From: Amoeboradix gromovi X-113
Lineage: Eukaryota; Fungi; Sanchytriomycota
Assembly (NCBI GenBank): GCA_018985225.1
Contig: JADGIF010000204.1
Location: forward strand, 1 to 14,836
Reading direction: 5' to 3'
Length of the DNA stretch: 14,836 nt
Made by a program: the position numbers and the translations under genes. This document shows positions 4,365 to 14,836 of the stretch, piece after piece. Numbering within the stretch: the first letter of the stretch is position 1; each line of letters opens with the position of its first letter. A model generated the notes under the pieces. That model was not told the origin of the DNA. It ran no database searches and saw nothing but the letters and a program-made list of their open reading frames with translations.

Positions 4365-6116
4365 TTATTTCATTTCAATGTTTTCGACACTCTCTTCGTG
4401 CATCGAATGAATGAAATCTACTCCACAATCCAGAATCAGCTTTATCGAAGTGCTATTTATATTTATTACATCAAAGGTTTTGCTCATTTTTGAATATTTG
4501 ATATACATGTCATTGATTGCTTTCACCGCACTATAATCCAAGCAATTACATTCTTTCATATCCAAAATGACATTATCCGGATCTCTAAAAACATCGAACT
4601 TGTCATTGAACAAATGCACAGATCCGAAATAAAGTGGCCCTTGACAGATGTAAACTTTGTCTTGTTTATTGTTTACAGTTATTTTTAATAACTTACTGGA
4701 TCCCCAACTGTTACAGAGTGCTGCCAAGACTACGCCTGCAAACACCGCTGTGGCCAAGTTGTACATAACAGCCAATACGGTGACTAATACAATAACCATT
4801 GAATCCTGCACTGGTATTTTGAACAGCAAGAAGAATGATCTCCAATAAAATGTTTTAAACACAATTACCCACAATACACCTGATAAGCAAGCTACAGGGG
4901 CCAGCTTAATTACAAAGGGCAAGCCAGTTATAAATATTAGTACACTGAATCCCACAGATATTCCGCTTAATCTGTTCTTGCCTCCATTATAAACGTTAGC
5001 CATTGCTTGAGCAATCATAGCACCTCCCCCTTGAGTCTTAAATAAGCCACATACCAAATTTGCCAAGCCCTGCGCAAATGATTCTTGAATAGCCATCTGT
5101 GACGTGGTTGTAATTTGCAATTTTTCACTTACGGTAACCAGTGTCATTATTGATTCACAAAGTCCAATTAACGCCAACATCGCTGCATACAGCAATGCTA
5201 CATTCCATCTAATGTTAGATATGTTAGGTAAGCCGGGCACAGGGAAATTTCCAGTAATGTTGGAAATATCACCAACAGTTCTAACTGCTTGATGTATTAG
5301 AGTTCTGTTTATCAAATGCTCCCACATGGTAGTAAAGCACAGTGCTACAAGAGTGTTCGGTAGTATTTTGCCTATTCTGGGCACCATAGGAAACAGCACC
5401 ATGATTATCACCGTTTGAAAAACGCAAAGTATAGTCAACCACAGCTCTAGAGAGTTTGTATCCATATAATACAATTTATTTTGAATAGAGCATTCTGTAA
5501 ATGTACCGGAATCACATGTTTTGAATATTGTTAGTTGAGTAATAAATATTAAAATGCTAAGGCCATTTAAAAATCCAATCATTGCAGTCTCTGGTATTAG
5601 CTTGATAAATTTTGCCAACTTGAATAAGCCAACTAGCATTTGAAGTATACCTACGAATATGATCGTTAACCACACATATTCACGTCGTTCTTTAACAGGC
5701 AAATCGCCAAGCGGACCCAAGTTGTCCATTAGTTCTTTAGTCACAACTGCCAGTGCACCTGCTGCACCATTAGCCATTCCACCAACACTAGTGAATAGGC
5801 TAGCTATAACTGCCATAAAAACTGTAGCAAACAAACCATCTTCAGGTTCTAGATGAGCAGCATAACTGAATGCTACAACTTCAGGAACCATTAGTGTGCT
5901 GACGCATAAACCAGAAAGAACTTCCTTTATAAGCACATCGTTGTTGTTGTAATAATACTGAATGCTATGTAATGAAAAGTGAAATATTTTTATTGGCCAC
6001 TTGGTGATAACAGTTAAACTTTCTATCTCATTAATCAGCGATGACCTAATAGAGAGATAGCAGGTGTTGATATCTTTAAGCAAATTGTTAAAATCATTAA
6101 AAACTGATGATTTCAT
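4365..6116 (-). CDS. SulP/SLC26 family inorganic anion transporter with C-terminal STAS domain, bacterial-like subfamily
   Basis: Motifs EVLSGLCVSTLMVPEVVAFS, GMANGAAGALAVV, ESFAQGLANLVCGLF..GGGAMIAQ and STAS GPLYFGS..DPDNVILD..LDYSAVKAI; many TM segments. First ATG is at 6116 (the ORF track starts at TTG 6119). Confidence 0.93.
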   Translation of the reverse strand: MKSSVFNDFNNLLKDINTCYLSIRSSLINEIESLTVITKWPIKIFHFSLHSIQYYYNNNDVLIKEVLSGLCVSTLMVPEVVAFSYAAHLEPEDGLFATVFMAVIASLFTSVGGMANGAAGALAVVTKELMDNLGPLGDLPVKERREYVWLTIIFVGILQMLVGLFKLAKFIKLIPETAMIGFLNGLSILIFITQLTIFKTCDSGTFTECSIQNKLYYMDTNSLELWLTILCVFQTVIIMVLFPMVPRIGKILPNTLVALCFTTMWEHLINRTLIHQAVRTVGDISNITGNFPVPGLPNISNIRWNVALLYAAMLALIGLCESIMTLVTVSEKLQITTTSQMAIQESFAQGLANLVCGLFKTQGGGAMIAQAMANVYNGGKNRLSGISVGFSVLIFITGLPFVIKLAPVACLSGVLWVIVFKTFYWRSFFLLFKIPVQDSMVIVLVTVLAVMYNLATAVFAGVVLAALCNSWGSSKLLKITVNNKQDKVYICQGPLYFGSVHLFNDKFDVFRDPDNVILDMKECNCLDYSAVKAINDMYIKYSKMSKTFDVININSTSIKLILDCGVDFIHSMHEESVENIEMK

Positions 6117-6158
6117 CAAGTATTATGATTTGTAAATGTTTTAAGGGTTTGTGACAAA

Positions 6159-6205
6159 CGCCCACATTAAATACGAATAAATTCGACATCTCTCAAGTGT
6201 AGGCA
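6159..6205 (-). ncRNA. Putative omegaRNA scaffold 3' hairpin, copy A (shortened apical stem)
   Basis: TGCCTACA pairs with TGTGGGCG; AGATG(T)CGAA pairs with TTCGTATTT; same architecture as copies B-D. Confidence 0.5.
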
Positions 6206-6310
6206 ACTTGGTAATTCCTAACTATATAGATAATAGGGTGCCTGGATTAAAATCTCTATGATCTTGGTAACCACAAGATGAACATCTAAACCAACCACCT
6301 ATGAAAATTT
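6159..6310 (-). mobile_element. Fanzor/TnpB relic A (3' fragment: zinc-finger half, RuvC-III, conserved right end)
   Basis: Minus-strand translation from 6296: GWFRCSSCGYQDHRDFNPG...TKLPTLERC, homologous to relics B-D; ends in ATTCGTATTTAATGTGGGCG (6178-6159). Confidence 0.75.
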
Positions 6311-6489
6311 TGATTCCTAGTGCAGTTTTTAGGTTATCCTCCTACTTAAAAATGAGGACATTTTTTCAGAATGGGTCTCATATATCAAATGCATTCAGTT
6401 AATTCAGCATCCTGCGTGTGCAGGAAACAATATGAAGTGACTTATTGTTCGATATTCATCGTATTTTTCCTTTCTTCAAGTATGTATTA

Positions 6490-6858
6490 AGTGGGACACC
6501 AAATATAAAAACTAGACCAAGTCTTTTTTAAAGCAAGTGCTCCGTAAGGAGAAAGTATTATTAATAAAAGCCCTTCTTCTTTCAAACCAATTTTCTTTCA
6601 TTAATGTCATTCCCCTCTTTAAAATGTAACAAGATGTCCATTTCTTTATCTTCTTACCACCTTTCGTATAACTTATTTGTTGTTTTCTCTTCTTCTTATT
6701 AATCATTGTTTCTAAGACTCTGATGGATGAAAAACTATTATACTAGAATAATTTACTTGAACAGATTAATTTAATTTACTATCGGTTAATACACACTTGA
6801 AGTAATGGTTCAGATTATTTCAGAAATTTAGTCTAGTTTTTATATTTGATGTCCCACT
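6490..6858. mobile_element. MITE / non-autonomous DNA transposon, 369 bp, 28-bp terminal inverted repeats
   Basis: 6490-6517 AGTGGGACACCAAATATAAAAACTAGAC vs reverse complement of 6831-6858 AGTGGGACATCAAATATAAAAACTAGAC (27/28); third TIR copy at 176-203. No clean target-site duplication seen. Confidence 0.8.
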
Positions 6859-7090
6859 CGTTTATTAGCTATTTCTTTAGAACTTAATGAATTTCAATAG
6901 ATGAATACAAAGAATATCCAATTTTCATGCCACTGGGCGAATCCGCTGAAAGAATTATTGTGCAATATAAGTGACGCAGTCTATATGAATGTCTTATTTA
7001 ACCTAAACCAATGACTGATTTCATGATCACGATCTGATGTAATATTAAATGATCAGGAGTTGCTTCAATAACTCCTAGATTAAAATCAAA

Positions 7091-8227
7091 ATGATTGCGC
7101 TTGCATCTATTTTCGGGTTCCTTCTGCACGATGAGGTTGACAGCTTATTTTTACCCTTGCACAATTTCGTAACATCATTTAAACCTGGTGACGACCTTAC
7201 AAGTTCGGCTTTCGCTGAAGTGCACAAAAATACGCATCCTCTTCTAGATTGTAATTGGAAAAATTCCATCAAACCTAAAGATCATGCGAGAAATATGAAC
7301 TGCAGGATGTTGGTAAATTCTATCAAAGATCCTTCACTGGTAGGAAATTTTTTAGATTCTAAGTTAGGTTGCCGCACTACCTTGTCTTATTTTATAGATA
7401 ATGAATCGAATTACAGTTTCAAGTATCTTGCGGCACTGTGGCCTTATATGCTGAAATTTGATATCGGATTTGGATTTGAGTACAAATTTAATCGATTCAT
7501 TGAAAAGCAACAAGATGCAATCGATTATATCAAGACTGGTGTTAGTGCGGAAACACCTGACTTTAGAATATATGTTTCTTATGTGGTGTTCTGTAAGACG
7601 AAAGTGGAGCAAAGAACAAGAAAATTATTTGAAACTGTTAACAATCCTGACCAGTGGCTCTATTTCATATCAGTGACACAATTGTCTGATAGTTTCTCAC
7701 TTAAACAAGAATTAAGAGAGATTTTGACTTTGGATTTTATTAAGCGAAGTACAACCGCAATAAACCTTACTTGGTCATTTTCCATGAACATGGATGATTT
7801 TCTACAATACGATAACTGGTACCTTGTTTTGAAAGAAGTTTTTAGTCTGGAAAAAGATACCAAAGCTTTATCCTTTCTCTGTTTACGCTTCGCAAGAACA
7901 AACGACTTTGGTATATTTCAGGATTTATACGAGGATATACCTTATACTGATGAGCCAGCACTTGCAGCACTGTATAAGCTACATGGCATCGATCACGAGC
8001 AAGTAACCAATCTTGCGTTACAAAAACTGTCTAGCAAGACTACTTCAATTAAGCTTCGTAATATGTATTTAATAGTGTTATACATTATGATTGAAAATTT
8101 TACGCCGCAGAATCCAACTCTATACAGAAGTATTGAAAGTACTATGTATTTGGACCAGATACAGAAATACCCCCAACATAATTATGTGCTATATAAAGAA
8201 CTCGTTTCTAACTCGGGCACGTCTTGA
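7091..8227 (+). CDS. Hypothetical protein, 378 aa, possible N-terminal signal peptide, probably helical
   Basis: Long uninterrupted ATG to TGA ORF in AT-rich DNA; hydrophobic N-terminus MIALASIFGFLL; no family recognised. Confidence 0.75.
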   Translation: MIALASIFGFLLHDEVDSLFLPLHNFVTSFKPGDDLTSSAFAEVHKNTHPLLDCNWKNSIKPKDHARNMNCRMLVNSIKDPSLVGNFLDSKLGCRTTLSYFIDNESNYSFKYLAALWPYMLKFDIGFGFEYKFNRFIEKQQDAIDYIKTGVSAETPDFRIYVSYVVFCKTKVEQRTRKLFETVNNPDQWLYFISVTQLSDSFSLKQELREILTLDFIKRSTTAINLTWSFSMNMDDFLQYDNWYLVLKEVFSLEKDTKALSFLCLRFARTNDFGIFQDLYEDIPYTDEPALAALYKLHGIDHEQVTNLALQKLSSKTTSIKLRNMYLIVLYIMIENFTPQNPTLYRSIESTMYLDQIQKYPQHNYVLYKELVSNSGTS

Positions 8228-8246
8228 TTAATCAGTATTTGTTTGC

Positions 8247-8302
8247 CGCCTACGTTAAATGTGAAGAAACAAATCAGAGTTCACATTTCTCAAGTGTAGA
8301 CA
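8247..8302 (-). ncRNA. Putative omegaRNA scaffold 3' hairpin, copy B
   Basis: TGTCTAC/GTAGGCG outer stem and perfect AAATGTGAA/TTCACATTT middle stem, overlapping the last codons of the nuclease frame. Confidence 0.55.
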
Positions 8303-8759
8303 GCTTGGGTAGCTATCTCTCAGACACATTTTTGCCTGGATTGATACCTCAATGGTATTTGTGACCGCAATTGTAGCATTTGAGCCTTCTCGAATGTACG
8401 CTTTCTCTCGATTAATGATTATATTTAAAACACACAATGGTCGAATACGCCCTGTTTATAATAAATAGTTTCTGGTTCTGTAACTTGCATTTAGGGGATA
8501 GTCTTTGCTTAAAGGTATAGCGTCTAAGAGGCTACATCTCTCTGTTTTCATGTCTAGTAAGATTTTTAATTATTTATCGTGTTGCCATTTCTGGCAATAA
8601 GATCACTGGGTGCTTGCACAGAGAGTTTATCGTTTCATAATTCATTGTGGTAGCGAAATCTTCTATTTTTTGGTACCATCACGTTTTCTTTTTTGAAGTG
8701 TTACCGCGTTTCCTGACGTTCACAAACTCTGTATTGTACTGAAACCAGAGCAAAAACAT
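8247..8759 (-). pseudogene. Fanzor2/IS607-TnpB-like nuclease pseudogene, relic B (RuvC-II region, zinc finger, RuvC-III, right end)
   Basis: One frame 8759-8274 with 6 internal stops: ...WYQKIEDFATTMNYETINSLCKHPVILLPEMATR*IIKNLTRHENREM*PLRRYTFKQRLSPKCKLQNQKLFIINRAYSTIVCFKYNH*SRESVHSRRLKCYNCGHKYH*GINPGKNV...LSTLEKCEL*. This follows the Fanzor2-type order KI.N...LH.KTINYL...Y.VILLP / L.HY.FKQRL..KC / I.E.YTS..C..C / C..CG...RD.N. Ends in CTTCACATTTAACGTAGGCG (8266-8247). Confidence 0.85.
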
Positions 8760-10134
8760 TTGGCATTAAGGCTAAATTCTACAAGATGCATGAGACCTGA
8801 TATGACATTTTGGCCTCATCGATATTCAAACAGTCTGCTCATATATCAATAAATACTTTTTCTTAAATGCTATTACAATATGGCACGAATCTTAATGCTC
8901 CTATTCTTTATGAGCGACCCAAAATAGTACAACTTGTAATAATTTGTTGTAGCATCTGCAAGAAACCTAGATGGAAGGGTATGAATTTAGATGCTGCGAT
9001 TCATTTGGCATACCTATTATATACATCAATAAAGAACTCTATTGAGTGTAGTTATGCCAGTTTCTTGTTGCATCTCTCATGATAAAGTTTAGCAACTCCG
9101 AAATTTGGAAATTTCTACCTTCTATAAAATAAGCGCTCCCAAGACATTTCTATTTTGTTCAAATACGAGCAAGTCGATCGAAATCAGAAATTGAAATGAG
9201 ATGAAATCAGCATCAAGTAGGGACATTACTTGTGAAAACTTGTATAATTAATTTCATCATTTACTGATTTCAAGAAACAATTTTGACCATTGTGGATATG
9301 TTAAGGTTTTTAGCGTCTCATGACGCCATTTCTTGAAAAAACAGACATCATCGTCACCGTTGATATTTGGCATTTCCATTTCTATTAATTTAGCACACTC
9401 CAATGCCAAATACAGCTGCAAATATGGTTGTGATCTGAACAGATGCATTTATTTGTTACTAAACCAGTTTTAAATTAGTGACCTAAACGCCATTCTTAGA
9501 ATCAACCACTTGCTTTACTGGCAATTCTTTTAAATAATAGACAACATGCCTGTGGGATATTCTTCTCATCAAGAATGTGATCTGAATCCTCTGGTGCCAC
9601 GCTTATTCCGTTAAGCATTGTTTGTAATGATATGGGTGGATTAGCCCACGCAATTGAATCTGATCTTTTTAAATATACTTTATATAATCAAAATCACCGG
9701 CGTTTTCATTAGATTTCTCGTGCTTGTTTAGATTTCCAATATCAAATACAATAGGTAGCATATTACCATAAATCCTGATCATGGCCCTGTTAACATCGAT
9801 GGCTCCTAAAAGTTTTTCTTTTTATCTTTTGCTTTTGTTTTCCCATTATCTCACCATTGACAGCTTCAAACAAAAATAACTGTGGTAAGTGGTCCATGAA
9901 TTTCTTTTTAAAATATTCAAGTCTTTGGATTCATTTACTGAGGTCATCATCCCTGTCCAAGTGTTGATTTTTGCGCTTGTGTTCTGCAAACTTTTCTGCC
10001 GTAAACCCAAATGTGAATTTCTTAAATAAATCATAGTTCTCTTCAATTTTATTGGCGTATTTTATAAAACATTTATGGAAGATGGTTCAAATGTAATGCG
10101 TGTGGTCACGAAGATCATAGAGATATTAATCCAG

Positions 10135-10154
10135 GTATTGTTTTATTAATGTAG
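10135..10154 (+). other. 20-nt GT-AG intron within the RuvC-III motif of relic C
   Basis: CCAG|GTATTGTTTTATTAATGTAG|GGAAAAATATG; exact removal restores NPGKNM, collinear with intronless relics B and D. Confidence 0.72.
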
Positions 10155-10187
10155 GGAAAAATATGCTTAAATGGCACTTACCCAAGT

Positions 10188-10250
10188 TGTCTACACTGAA
10201 GGAGTGTGGGATCTCGAAGTAATTTGAGAGCTTCGCATTTAACGTAGGCG
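10188..10250 (+). ncRNA. Putative omegaRNA scaffold 3' hairpin, copy C
   Basis: TGTCTAC/GTAGGCG; GAGTGTGGG/TTCGCATTT (several G-U pairs); apical TCTCGAA-GTAA-TTTGAGA closed by a GNRA tetraloop. Confidence 0.6.
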
Positions 10251-10540
10251 TTAACACTGATACATATTTGAAGAATGTTTCAGGATCTTTGAAAGAAGCA
10301 TTATCAAATAAAATTATGAAAATAAACTAGAAAGATCGATACTATTCACCTGGCTATGTTTTCTAACTCTTTAACCGGAAAAGTAGGAGGTGTCGCCTTA
10401 CATGTTGAAGATGCTTATGAGACAACATTGCAAAACATGGAGAAATGATTATATGATTAGTAAAATGCATTGCTAAAACTCTGTTTATTACAGTAAAGAA
10501 CACTTCTACTTGAAACAGAATTTGTTGAATTGCCTTCAGC

Positions 10541-12100
10541 TTATGGACTGGCTCCCCATCCAGGTTGTTCCACTGGTTCATTTTCTCCAGTGCTGAGATT
10601 GCTCTTGGATTTTTGGATGTTTGAGTTGCTGGATATATCGTTTTTCACTAAAATGTTTGGTGAAGACTCCTTTTTTTGTATCTTGTAAGAGGTATCGAAC
10701 TTTATACCGTGAAACACTTTAGCTGCCAGGGCTGATTTGCGCTTCTTTTTTTTGGGAAATGACTGGGGAAATTCACGCGGAGGTTTTTCAGCAGCATGTT
10801 TATCAGCTATAGGTCTCCGTTGCGATATTAACTGTATATCATTTTTAATCACGTCTTGATACTTGCGCTTGATTTTATTGATCGTTGTTTGTGCAGGTGG
10901 GACTAGTAGACTAGGACTGGTATCAACTTGAGATCTATCAGGACTGGCACCCCAATTAGATGGTTCGTTAGATGCCTGGATAGATAGCTTGTTATCATAA
11001 TTAAGCAGAGGACTAGCACCCCATTCTGAGTAATTTTGTTTAGCAACAGTTGGAGACGTGACTACAGTTGGTAAATTGACATTAACATCAGGACTGGGTC
11101 CCCACATAGATGCTGATTCAGATGGTTGGATTCTCTTATCAGCGCTTTTATCATTAACATCAGGACTGGGTCCCCACATAGATTCTGATTTAGATGGTTG
11201 GGTTCTCTTCTCAGCGCTTTTATCATTAACATCAGGACTGGGTCCCCAGCCGACGTCTATAGAATCTGGAGTGGCACCTTCAATTTCTGGTGACTGGCCC
11301 CATTGAAAGATGGGCTTGCTATTGACCTCGGGTGAAGCAACCGGTTCCTCTTGATGTTCTCTTAATATTGCTTCTTCCCCTGACTCAGTGTGTTCCGGAG
11401 CTGTAAATCTAGGAGTCTCTTTATACGCAGTAATGACAATAACAGGTTGCGTATGAAACGGGCAGGGACCCAAATTTAGTTCCCTGTGCACTTCTTTGGA
11501 GTCAGGAAAGAGATATGAGTTCCAAATATTAGCATAACGGTTGGTAATTACACCAGCCTGGTTAACTCCATCTCTAGACAGAATACTGCGTAGCACCTTT
11601 TTATCGTAGAAATCTACTTCATACATCCATGGTTTATTGCCCACTGCATCCTCTTCTAAATAAATTAATTTAAGATAAAAAGTATCACAAAGCTTCATTT
11701 CGTTTAGATACGAATAGATCTCATCTACATCAATCAAGTTGTCTACTATTGTATATTGCGATACCTTGGCAAAGCTTTTGTCCTTCTCTTTGAATGAACC
11801 AACAACAAGTGAATCTATTTTTTTAACTGCGAAAGTATATTCCTTAAAACCAGTACATTCGCTGGGACAAAAACAAGTAAAGTTATTTGCTGACGTATCG
11901 TTATTGATGATAGTATCTGGCAGTCTTTGAGCAGGTTCATTTAATCTAATCTCGCCTGGCTCTGGTAAAGACAAGTCAATTGTGCTCTTGGTTAAAGGTT
12001 TGAAGTTTTTATTCCTTTCAGAATGAAAATGCACTCTCTCAGCAAACTCGCATGGGGTTTTGTTACAGTGATCGTGTGGTTCATTGTAATTTAAAATCAT
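10541..12100 (-). CDS. Hypothetical protein (519 aa or more): globular N-terminal region (possibly SPOC-like) plus disordered tail with seven WG-x-SP motifs and a basic NLS-like stretch
   Basis: Long ORF; WGQSP, WGPSP x3, WGASP x3; PKKKKRK. The 5' end is uncertain because more exons may lie in 12100-12660. Confidence 0.8.
   Translation of the reverse strand: MILNYNEPHDHCNKTPCEFAERVHFHSERNKNFKPLTKSTIDLSLPEPGEIRLNEPAQRLPDTIINNDTSANNFTCFCPSECTGFKEYTFAVKKIDSLVVGSFKEKDKSFAKVSQYTIVDNLIDVDEIYSYLNEMKLCDTFYLKLIYLEEDAVGNKPWMYEVDFYDKKVLRSILSRDGVNQAGVITNRYANIWNSYLFPDSKEVHRELNLGPCPFHTQPVIVITAYKETPRFTAPEHTESGEEAILREHQEEPVASPEVNSKPIFQWGQSPEIEGATPDSIDVGWGPSPDVNDKSAEKRTQPSKSESMWGPSPDVNDKSADKRIQPSESASMWGPSPDVNVNLPTVVTSPTVAKQNYSEWGASPLLNYDNKLSIQASNEPSNWGASPDRSQVDTSPSLLVPPAQTTINKIKRKYQDVIKNDIQLISQRRPIADKHAAEKPPREFPQSFPKKKKRKSALAAKVFHGIKFDTSYKIQKKESSPNILVKNDISSNSNIQKSKSNLSTGENEPVEQPGWGASP
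11080..11248. repeat. Coding tandem repeat, 72-bp unit, about 2.3 copies
   Basis: Unit CATTAACATCAGGACTGGGTCCCCA... starts at 11080, 11152 and 11224; encodes the 24-aa WGPSPDVNDKSA.KR.QPS.S.SM repeat. Confidence 0.92.
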
Positions 12101-12700
12101 GGATAATTACGAACTCCAATCTCCTTGTAATAGTGGACTCCTCTTGAAAAGTCTTGGCTGGCATAGAATCAAGAATTTTTACAGGGAAACTTACAGAACC
12201 AATTGATCCATTGCATTAGTAACTGATATCATTGGAACTCTGAGGCAGCATTGAGTAAGGGTGTACATTTCAAGTAAATGCACCTTGCTGCAATATGTTA
12301 TACATAATTCCAAATGACAATTTATACATAGCGATCTCTCCAACTTGCTTTTCTTTAGAATTATACGCCTTGTATAATCTTGACTAATAAATTCTTGATT
12401 AAAATGTACAATTTTTCTTTCTGTCTCTTGGAAAACAATTTAGTTATCAAGGGATTTTACGGGTGTAAAAGAGTGTATTTTATATCACTCGGTGACTTCC
12501 TTGGACTCTGTATAGTCCTGTCTAAGATAATTTGAACAGGAATACCATGTGAAAGAATGATTACTCTGTTTTTCTTTCATTGGGAATTATAGTAAACGCG
12601 AATGTTATAACGATAAAACTAATCTGCTCAAGACAAAAGGTACATTTAGCGAAAACCATTTCCTGTTTTGGTAGATTCCAAGGATTATTTTTAGAAACTT

Positions 12701-13778
12701 ATGCTATTTGTTGTAATTGCTAGCGCCGTTCAAGTTCTAGTAAGTAAATTGCCGAAGGTTTTTGAGAAATACCATCAGATTAACGAGGTTATTCCTTATT
12801 ATGATGGCATTGAATCGGATGACAACTTGATTGTCATCGATGGCCTTGTAAAAGACGCAAATCATCTAGTACACAATTCAGCTCATCAAAACATGGTTAT
12901 TTTCACTTCAGAAAACAAGGTCATTAAGCAGTTTGTCACTGAATTAGGTATTGAATATGTTAGTCCCACAAGTATGAAAATAAATCATGACAATTACCAC
13001 AGTAGTTCGAGTACTATTCTGGGAAACAAAACACCTTCTTTCGATTACAAAGGACCATTATTGCACGGTACTAATAATATTTTGAGTTTTCCTTTGATTA
13101 CAGGTTATGTTGAAGACATTAAAGATCAGTATGTAGGCAGCCAATTGGAGCTTATTAGACTCGTGCAAACCCGAATAAACACCAGAATTGCTGTGCTACC
13201 AAAAGAGCTTCTAGATATACCAGAAGCAGCGCCTGTGATTAGTAAAGTTTTGGATTGGACTTTTAAACTGATTAATGTTTTAAAGATTAAGGTAGAGCAT
13301 TTCAAAGTAGATGATTCTGGCAATAAGATAAGTAATCAGCTGAAAGAATATAAAATTAAGGACAAAATTGTAGTTTTAACTAACTTAGCAAATAAATGCT
13401 GAATTGAGTAATTTAGACAAGCCATTCAAAATCGATGACTTGCAAGTTGAACTGATTATGCTGGACCCTTATATTCGCACCACTTTTGAATACAAAGAAA
13501 GCACATCCTCAACTGCCAAGTACTCTAAAATATTAACTCTGCCTGATCGCTATGGCTACTTTACGTTGCGAGTTTCTTATAAAAGATACGGATTCACATA
13601 TGCTGAGCACAAGGAACTTATTGTAATAAGACATTTAGCACACGATGAATATGAAAGATTTATTCCAAAAGCTGGCCCGTATTATTCTACCTATTTTGGA
13701 TTAACTGCAAGTTTGGTAGTTGTGTGCTTCTTTTGGTTATTCAAATTACCAGAAAACGCAACAAAAAAGAATCAGTAA
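12701..13778 (+). CDS. WBP1: Oligosaccharyltransferase beta subunit WBP1/OST48 (DDOST); join(12701..13369,13389..13778), 352 aa
   Basis: DDLQVELIMLDPYIRTT, LPDRYGYFTLRVSYKRYGFT, IRHLAHDEYERFIPKAGPYYS, C-terminal TM helix and KKxx ER-retrieval signal (KKNQ), N-terminal signal peptide. The two ORFs are joined in frame by removing a 19-nt intron (EYKIKDKI|QINAELSNLDKPF). Confidence 0.93.
13370..13388 (+). other. 19-nt spliceosomal intron in WBP1
   Basis: GTAGTTTTAACTAACTTAG: GT donor, CTAAC branch point, TAG acceptor; removal restores the reading frame of a conserved gene. Confidence 0.85.
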
Positions 13779-13864
13779 ACGATTTTTCTTTTATTAATAG
13801 AGTATAATTAAAGGTTTCGAAAAAAAACAATTCTTAACAAAACGTGTAACACTTACTCTTTTTT

Positions 13865-14328
13865 ATGTACACTATGCAATGGAAAGAGCTGTGAACCTTT
13901 GTTAATTTTGAGTTGAAAACATAATGCAGTGGTATTGTGCGAAATGGAAAGAATTCAAAATTTATCAGAGTTGCTTCAGTCAAGAAGGAATTCGATGTTT
14001 CTGACACGCATCCACGTTAGAATTTTGGTCTGCGTAGATTGCTGGTGTTTAAACATCCCATTTTGGCGCAACATCATCCATGGCTCAAGGATATGCCTGT
14101 AGAGTTCGTGATGCTGCATACATGGATTTCCAAAGAATGCCTCAGATGCAATCAACAATCAAGAGAAAGCGTACATTCAAGACGATTACAATGCATTGAA
14201 TGCGGTCATGAAAACCAAAGAGACATCAATCCAGGCAAGAATATGCTTAAATGGTGTCTCCACGAGTTGTCTACGCTTAAGAAATGTGAACTCTGAACTG
14301 TTTTAGATCTTCGCATTTAACATAGACG
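13865..14328 (+). pseudogene. Fanzor/TnpB relic D (frameshifted RuvC-II region, zinc finger, RuvC-III, right end)
   Basis: ORF 14039-14296 contains WISKECLRC...RRLQCIECGHENQRDINPGKNML (CxxC...CxxC plus RDxN). Upstream frames give TMQWK/AVNLC/KHNAVVLCEM/LTRIHVR, aligning with relic B TMNYE/TINSLC/KHPVILLPEM/LTRHENR. Ends in CTTCGCATTTAACATAGACG (14309-14328). Confidence 0.87.
14268..14328 (+). ncRNA. Putative omegaRNA scaffold 3' hairpin, copy D
   Basis: TGTCTA/TAGACG; AAATGTGAA/TTCGCATTT; apical TCTGAA/TTTAGA. Confidence 0.58.
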
Positions 14329-14836
14329 TAAGTTACTTAATTGGAACCATTGCTTCCTAAATAATCAGGAGTTTTCTCGGAGAGACTAACATGTCAATTG
14401 CTCTGTTACAATAGTTGCCCACTCTTCCGCACCCTAAAGCAAGATTTACTGCCTTGCAAATGGTACAGGAACTCCTCCTATAGGACAGTTCATGCGGAAG
14501 AGTATGTTCTTGATTGCTTCTTGAGGTATTTATGTTTAATATTCCAGTTGAGATGGTTTAGACATTTGCCAAGATAGAAAAATTAGATTTTTATGCAACT
14601 AGTAACTCTATAAGAAATTATGTTCAGGCGAAAGATTTCGTTTAATTATAATGTATCCTTTTATTCAATTAAGTACGATGGCTTTTGCTAAGTGTATTCT
14701 GGAAAGAATTTCAAAAACTTTGGGAAATAATCAAAACAATTTACTGAGAACTCCAAGACATCGCCTTAATGATGCTGATCATTATGTGTTTGCAAGATCA
14801 TGCTTGGCGTATAGGGTGATGACGCTATGCCGCTTA

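Follow-up and report, generated by a model that had tools for sequence, protein, structure and literature searches.

The stretch of DNA considered here, 14,836 nt of contig JADGIF010000204.1 from Amoeboradix gromovi X-113 (assembly GCA_018985225.1), referred to at its full length as the window, very probably contains four independent, dead insertions of a single family of IS607-type transposons, which encode a Fanzor2 nuclease together with the serine recombinase TnpA. The window (about 35% G+C) is made up of long open reading frames (ORFs) with spacers of 0.3-2 kb between them, and the four copies most probably persist there as inert DNA between the genes of a compact genome. Genome searches covered the window's own assembly (10,549,678 bases in 1319 contigs), and copies on contigs without extracted loci were judged from the search tables alone. 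Transposons are not mentioned in the genome paper (PMC8371127), and a literature search found no paper linking Fanzor with sanchytrids.

The Fanzor2 family and its four copies in the window

As judged from its sequence features, the family should be regarded as a Fanzor2 within an IS607-type element of about 2 kb, and thus as a known kind, since Fanzor2 in IS607-type elements has already been described (PMC3627910). A previous interpretation of the window from its letters alone (the sequence-only reading) had recognized the TnpB/Fanzor identity of the relics, which is borne out by matches to PF07282, guided_TnpB and L79, but had missed the IS607 type, i.e., the association of Fanzor2 with a serine-recombinase TnpA. 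A nearly full-length copy was found on contig C459, where tnpA (L031:1135-1749) matches Resolvase (3e-17) with weak MerR helix-turn-helix (HTH) matches ahead of it, which is the IS607 domain order. The TnpB of this copy matches PF07282 (1.9e-15), shows a weak match to HTH_OrfB_IS605 and is covered in both halves by NCBIfam guided_TnpB. The nearest solved structure is that of the mimivirus TnpB-like protein L79, a Fanzor2 (1.2e-7; 5.8e-15 for P0002, an intact metagenome relative with 52% identity that agrees in gene order and terminal 20-mer).

Fanzor hallmarks can be read directly in the C459 TnpB (ALDPG in RuvC-I, NEAYSTIEC, CxxC..CxxC and HRD), and the three RuvC acidic residues (in ALDPG, NEAYST and HRDINPG) are present in this copy as well as in P0002. 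The hallmarks reported for Fanzor2 and pro-Fanzor proteins are a DPG motif in RuvC-I and a catalytic Glu located six residues before the zinc finger, called "Ealt" (PMC10711439, PMC13565253), and the family contains ALDPGV in RuvC-I together with a Glu shifted to just this distance (E-AYSTIE-C or E-SYSTKT-C). The tnpA gene is located directly upstream of that for TnpB on C459 and on the contig of P0002, and one of the window copies (D) keeps the tnpA start. The TnpB stop codon lies about 31 nt ahead of the right end. An intact element would consist, in this order, of a left end starting with CCG, tnpA (MerR-like HTH and Resolvase), an overlapping gene for a Fanzor2-type TnpB, and a right end ...TTCGCATTTAACGTAGG-CG.

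The copies and associated features of the window are given below, with scores of a covariance model, R1, that represents the last 140 nt of the element.

Copy A, 6159-6310, minus strand: short, strongly diverged relic, supported by alignments, translation and an R1 score of 80.5 bits over 6160-6288; contains the zinc finger and RuvC-III end (..CSSCGYQDHRDFNPG), a decayed intron-like insert of 20 nt, and the right end ...TGTGGGCG.
Copy B, 8247-8759, minus strand: TnpB gene, 3' half, starting near residue 250 (..FATTMNYETINSLCKHPVILLPE..) and running through the right end; five in-frame stops; R1 score 134.5 bits.
Copy C, 9999-10250, plus strand: miniature of 252 nt with both ends; R1 score 123.1 bits.
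Putative intron in copy C, 10135-10154, plus strand: 20 nt, GT..AG, seen in alignment and translation.
Copy D, 13784-14328, plus strand: derivative of about 545 nt with two internal deletions; R1 score 147.5 bits.
Right-end compound hairpin, 14256-14328 in copy D, plus strand: found in all four copies, from a consensus fold on 20 copies.
Flanks of 20 nt past the right ends: D 14329-14348, plus; A 6139-6158, minus; B 8227-8246, minus; C 10251-10270, plus.

The homology of the four segments is confirmed by a repeat finder, which joins all of them (pairs D4, D8, D10, D13, I1, I2 and I13, of which I1 extends over 154 nt at 75%, I2 over 72 nt at 75% and I13 over 20 nt at 95%). The peptide motif C..CG...NPG noticed in the sequence-only reading is present in the translations of all four. 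Copy D reads C..C...C..CGHENQRDINPGKNMLKW...LSTLKKC, copy B reads alike apart from its stops, and copies C and A read ...CGH/YE/QDHRDI/FNPG, followed by the 20-nt insert and then (G)KNMLKW. CxxC..CxxC is readable in D, B, C and A, and RuvC-III is the part that survives in all four, while B also retains the NRAYST position. The concern that such peptides might fail TnpB profiles has been settled by the 85-aa peptide of D, which passes the Pfam PF07282 cut-off (27.5 vs 26.3 bits). None of the four copies contains a complete nuclease gene.

A four-way alignment shows the common right boundary ...TTCGCATTTAACGTAGGCG proposed before, with similarity stopping at ...TTCG/ACATTTAAC/TG/ATAGG/ACG and unrelated letters past it; the four 20-nt flanks are likewise unrelated to one another. 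The mutual identity of the copies is only about 70-77%, and copy C has much closer relatives on other contigs, which argues for separate insertions belonging to different subfamilies and not for local duplication. Separate insertion of each copy would also account for the differing sequences past the shared end. Concerning the coordinates of the sequence-only reading, those of A stand, whereas the left limit of C moves to 9999 and that of D probably lies near 13784, and the family homology of B ends between about 8714 and 8759.

The boundary is shared far beyond the window. It falls on the same base in 31 distinct copies from other contigs, all with unrelated flanks, and at least 148 R1 matches in the genome reach the final position of the model without exception, which agrees with the earlier suggestion of a high-copy family. 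The latter number is a lower bound, since scoring was limited to 150 candidates and many contigs break off within the repeat; a genome search with copy D as query gave 44 matches. The striking local density noted before is real: four right ends within 8.2 kb compare with about 0.115 expected from at least 148 right ends in 10.55 Mb, corresponding to a Poisson P(>=4) of about 7e-6. On other contigs too (C404, C528, C1028, C689, C545, C392 and C454), two or more copies of the family are often spaced a few hundred bases to a few kb apart, which may reflect nested or local insertion.

Conserved ends, decay and possible activity

The left end begins with CCG(T/C)TGA... about 170 nt ahead of the tnpA ATG and is preceded by unrelated DNA in eight copies. 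The base following ...GTAGGC is G in about three quarters of the 31 right-end copies, and the dinucleotide CG is common to both junctions (..C-CG-TTGA on the left, ..TAGG-CG on the right). By analogy with IS607 of H. pylori, which uses GG (PMC6188088), this CG is probably the crossover dinucleotide. A fixed first base after the right end is also known from IS607 (PMC10711439), where recombination at a shared dinucleotide is expected. On the model of IS607, the serine recombinase would move the element by recombining both of its ends with the target, which would explain why all copies end at one base with unrelated DNA beyond. Neither inverted termini nor target duplications were seen in the eight left and 31 right junctions. 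No conserved transposon-adjacent motif (TAM) was readable from the eight left flanks, and to regard CCG as the TAM would be speculation.

The last 75 nt or so can be folded into a compound hairpin consisting of GTCTAC/GTAGGC (GTAGAC in D), AAATGTGAA/TTCGCATTT and an inner stem CTCTGA/TCAGA. In an alignment of 26 copies, 88% of the cells are paired, as compared to 16-52% in slid registers, the z value for single sequences is about -2, and subfamily C retains the inner stem in different letters (CTCGAA/TTTGAG). Still, no measure of covariation among the 26 copies exceeded column shuffles, RNAalifold recovered almost nothing from the same alignment, and the hairpin should therefore be seen as a property of the master sequence and not as a proven RNA structure. 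Scans of the window against Rfam (E<=0.1) and for tRNAs gave no match. The hairpin presumably represents the TnpA-bound end and the 3' scaffold of the omegaRNA; it is compatible with an omegaRNA scaffold, a recombinase site or both in the master copies, which is not evidence of a present function.

The terminal 20-mer is nearly identical even in metagenome relatives with 42-52% protein identity, and such retention of the terminal letters across distant relatives indicates strong constraint on the end itself. Relatives were recovered from the metagenomes by an alignment-based scan, a scan with a single protein query having found nothing. The right-end sequence ...TT(C/T)GC(A/G)ATTTAACGTAGGCG is kept at 42-52% protein identity, and TTTAACGTAGGCG is found at 39% (L091:2090-2110, L092, L094, L093). 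The 3' 140-200 nt are the best-kept part. The codons for the zinc finger and RuvC-III, the recombinase-bound end and the presumed omegaRNA scaffold are combined there, and constraint would thus have been strongest on this part during the active time of the family.

Copy C is an internal-deletion derivative that has retained both its ends. The left one (CCGTAAACCC..., 9999-10075) is fused directly to the last 175 nt or so with the zinc finger, RuvC-III and the right end. Its left-end segment of about 76 nt (10001-10075) shares 98.7% identity with the sequence ahead of tnpA in a long copy on contig C373, and the similarity starts exactly at C(C/T)GTAAACCC. Copy D is probably of the same type. 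It starts a few bases past the stop codon of the OST48 gene (13778) with a left part (about 13784-13937) of weak left-end similarity, followed by a region with the starts of both tnpA and the +1 ORF (13937-14010, with 13938-14010 at 88%), where the tnpA ATG is mutated to GTG (13937) and the +1-frame ATG is located at 13944. Of TnpB, the copy retains part of the N-terminal region (about 13991-14104) and the C-terminus, the latter together with the right end (14146-14328, with 14146-14321 at 83%). The left end of D is probably present, even though a left-end profile run on the window gave no significant match in any of A, B and D (the best value for D was E=3.7 at 13805-13837) and a MAFFT alignment of the upstream regions was uninformative. 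C and probably D are accordingly short derivatives resembling miniature inverted-repeat transposable elements (MITEs), which could be mobilised in trans. Copy B is a stop-ridden 3' half, with a family match at 8592-8714 and 75% identity to the C459 copy over 8248-8693; its right end is located 20 nt past the stop codon of the ORF 7091-8227. Copy A is an old stump, whose right end is located 40 nt upstream of the start codon of a sulfate-permease gene (4365-6119, minus strand).

Other internal-deletion derivatives occur on contigs C1081, C766, C757, C473, C420 and C404, each with a different breakpoint. The sequence-only reading had described the relics as 5'-eroded copies that preferentially keep the RNA-encoding end. 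This does not hold for C and probably not for D, in which 5' sequence is kept, whereas an excess of 3' ends does exist: the coverage by fragments follows a U-shaped course over the element, falling from 10-13 at the 5' end to 5-8 in the middle and rising to 24-29 at the 3' end. Part of this excess is a detection effect, because the subfamilies differ far less from one another at the 3' end.

All copies of the family examined are broken by stops, frameshifts or deletions (C459, C426, C392, C1028, C689 and others), and no intact and usable nuclease of the family was found in the assembly. The best copy, on C459, carries a single in-frame TAA in the conserved ILLPEF motif, at a position occupied by Glu in B, C426 and the relatives. 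An assignment of this stop (ILLP*F) to the catalytic Glu was rejected, as the catalytic Glu of Fanzor is located six residues before the zinc finger. The frame breaks on C392 and C426 were likewise rejected as introns, the former being a frameshifting deletion and the latter copy also containing an in-frame stop.

Some points weigh against interpreting the window as a set of independent dead insertions. Four copies within 8 kb exceed random scatter. The assembly is fragmented, with many contigs beginning or ending inside the right end, and an intact copy could therefore sit in unassembled sequence. Subfamily C looks young, with 98.7% identity between copies. The left end of D is only weakly recognisable, and the left boundaries of B and A were not located. 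Finally, the transposition of the family is itself deduced, and transcription of the ends is possible.

Some of these observations would also suit a family that is still active, with an autonomous copy remaining unassembled, two-ended miniatures like C being mobilised in trans by TnpA, and the cluster in the window reflecting recent local hopping. The near identity of subfamily C across contigs (98.7% over the left-end segment, one or two differences in the last 70 nt), the contig breaks inside the right end, the single stop in the best copy and the existence of intact relatives in metagenomes all point in this direction. Nevertheless, current activity appears unlikely, as breaks were found in all long copies that were examined, an identity of only about 75% marks the four window copies as old relative to one another, and neither polymorphism nor excision speaks for it.

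The sequence-only reading had proposed another role for the relics, namely that they are kept as guide donors, whose right ends yield omegaRNAs and whose flanks programme an intact Fanzor elsewhere. This idea could draw on the right end and its hairpin being the best-conserved part, on the omegaRNAs of Fanzor2 running 14-15 nt past the end (PMC13565253), and on an apparently intact Fanzor2 of a different family on contig C542. The protein on C542 is, however, only about 28% identical to the family and has a different C-terminal motif (DRDHLAARNI), which makes a cognate scaffold unlikely, and the assembly holds no intact nuclease of the family itself. For the flanks to act as omegaRNA guides, both transcription of the ends and a cognate nuclease would be required; the 72-nt flanks of B, C and D match themselves alone in the genome. 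Moreover, the covariation of the hairpin does not exceed that of shuffles, B, C and A carry mutations or the intron-like insert inside the scaffold region, and the guide of known TnpB proteins matches the element's own empty site, so that an extra function is unneeded. The guide-donor idea is thus abandoned as highly improbable. That the segments represent a host gene family or a local segmental duplication instead of transposon ends, as their presence in four neighbouring spacers might suggest, is practically discounted by the at least 148 right ends in the genome, the copies with unrelated flanks on other contigs, the homology to TnpB and IS607 TnpA, and the occurrence of copies on both strands with stops throughout. 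Independent dead insertions of one IS607-type Fanzor2 family therefore remain the preferred interpretation.

A second, more abundant Fanzor family is characterized by the C-terminal motif DRDH(M/L)AA(K/R)NI (L083 on C974, L088/L073 on C542, and L031:509-769), and many of its copies carry a recurring open frame of 144-145 aa. The copy on C542 contains an apparently open nuclease ORF next to a tnpA with one stop at a conserved Trp. A search of the genome with PF07282 gave 560 first-look candidates, and all of the 150 that were scored exceeded the cut-off.

Further repeats were observed in the window. One of about 75-100 nt at 6301-6402, distinct from the family and present in at least 38 copies in the genome, directly abuts copy A on its left. 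A separate element of about 370 nt (6489-6858) is bounded by 31-nt inverted repeats (94% complementary), a third copy of this repeat arm is located at 173-204, and its sequence is also found beside Fanzor relics on other contigs (L023, L056). Three tandem units of 72 nt, 94-100% identical, lie at 10930-11250 inside the ORF 10541-12100 (minus strand, 519 aa), for which no Pfam family was found.

The RuvC-III insert and the reading frame overlapping tnpA

An insert of 19-20 nt with GT..AG borders splits the RuvC-III motif INPG|GKNM, and its removal restores the reading frame. It is carried by copies C and A (decayed in A) and by the lineages represented on contigs C426, C392, C373 and C528, with a length of 19 nt in C426 (L035) and C392 (L036), and about 45 of the R1 matches contain an extra 20-28 nt. 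Its absence from C459-type copies and from the metagenome relatives indicates a gain within this genome. An intron of the same kind is found in the host OST48 gene of the window, where the removal of 19 nt (13370-13388) with GT..AG borders and CTAAC before the AG joins the ORFs 12701-13402 and 13404-13778. One Fanzor2 subfamily thus appears to have gained a spliceosomal intron of 19-20 nt inside its RuvC-III motif. The insert also falls inside the presumed omegaRNA scaffold region.

The nuclease frame of the C459 copy (L031:1135-2944), which is in the +1 relation to tnpA, is open over all of tnpA, resulting in an ORF of 495 aa from an ATG located 7 nt after that of tnpA. The same open overlap is present on C542 (671-aa ORF) and in an intact metagenome relative (627-aa ORF, again starting 7 nt after the tnpA ATG). 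With the TnpA protein of C459 kept constant, about 12 stops would be expected in the +1 frame from host codon usage and 3.6 from a permutation of the gene's own synonymous codons, the latter with a probability of about 0.005 for none. The same relation was followed in two larger sets of loci, the first of which was chosen solely by TnpB similarity, while the second comprises loci from Poribacteria, Caldilineaceae, cyanobacteria and Thiomargarita.

Viral, metagenomic and own loci: 35 distinct; +1 relation in 32; zero +1 stops in 27 (about 3.5 expected by permutation); zero +2 stops in 0.
Bacterial loci: 40 distinct; +1 relation in 37; zero +1 stops in 15 (about 2.5 expected by permutation); zero +2 stops in 0.

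The first +1 ATG follows that of tnpA by 4-16 nt in about 19 loci of the 35-locus set, and a relative that has lost tnpA still retains the conserved KSWF...SVMSLL block of the extension within the nuclease ORF. That selection keeps the +1 frame open is well supported by these values. The +1 peptide is only weakly conserved beyond what the overlap with tnpA imposes (P = 0.19, 0.035 and 0.004 in three pairs), and the case for the overlap therefore rests on stop avoidance, frame relation and start position. It may well be, then, that the nuclease is overprinted on tnpA across the IS607 clade of pro-Fanzor, giant-virus and eukaryotic Fanzor2, the +1 frame being stop-free over the approximately 200 codons of tnpA and adding an N-terminal extension of about 200 aa. 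Translation would be expected to start at the upstream +1 ATG, and both proteins could be made from one eukaryotic mRNA by leaky scanning. The extension matches no Pfam family; it contains basic KRK clusters, in line with Fanzor N-termini being reported as disordered and bearing nuclear localization signals (PMC10530073). The ORFs of IS607 have been described as "often" overlapping (PMC6188088), and a description of a full-length tnpA/nuclease overlap was not found in a literature search.

Relation to known elements and significance

The closest known systems are the IS607-type Fanzor2 elements ISvMimi (mimivirus L79 = ApmFNuc) and ACa-1/2 of Acanthamoeba, also termed "IS607EU". They likewise combine a serine-recombinase TnpA with Fanzor2, contain the DPG motif and the shifted Glu (PMC3627910, PMC10530073), and have a conserved 3' end where the guide RNA is encoded. 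They lack terminal inverted repeats and target duplications, neither of which was seen at the junctions examined here. In contrast to these elements from giant viruses and Acanthamoeba, the family described here resides in a cellular, fungus-like genome of 10.5 Mb with at least 148 right ends, its examined copies are all decayed, and one of its subfamilies appears to contain an ultra-short intron in RuvC-III. A further difference concerns the 3' region, since about 200 nt of non-coding 3' conservation have been reported for ApmFNuc, whereas no more than about 31 nt separate the stop codon from the right end in this family. Bacterial IS607 or "pro-Fanzor" TnpB proteins (ISXfa1 and those of cyanobacteria, Poribacteria and Chloroflexota) are encoded in the same layout with the nuclease in +1 relative to tnpA, yet the protein identity is only 23-30%. 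Copies C and D and many others resemble MITE-like derivatives in being short and having kept both ends, with differing breakpoints. They differ from MITEs in that no inverted repeats were seen at their ends, a serine recombinase would mobilise them, and no amplified single deletion form was demonstrated for the family.

The four loci themselves matter little, since they are dead transposon pieces, and to regard them as a reservoir of guide RNAs is an over-reading. Their wider setting is of more value, as this compact, fast-evolving, fungus-like genome is one of the densest Fanzor graveyards for study, which offers a series of deletion derivatives, an apparent intron gain in a Fanzor gene and an apparently open Fanzor2 of a second family. 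Of most interest are the gain of the intron and the conserved overprinting of tnpA and nuclease genes, within the respective strength of their support. For the field, the +1 overlap between nuclease and tnpA, whose conservation extends from bacteria to eukaryotes, may matter most: if it is translated, the annotated starts of Fanzor2 and TnpB proteins in this clade would be wrong, and their expression and regulation would need rethinking.

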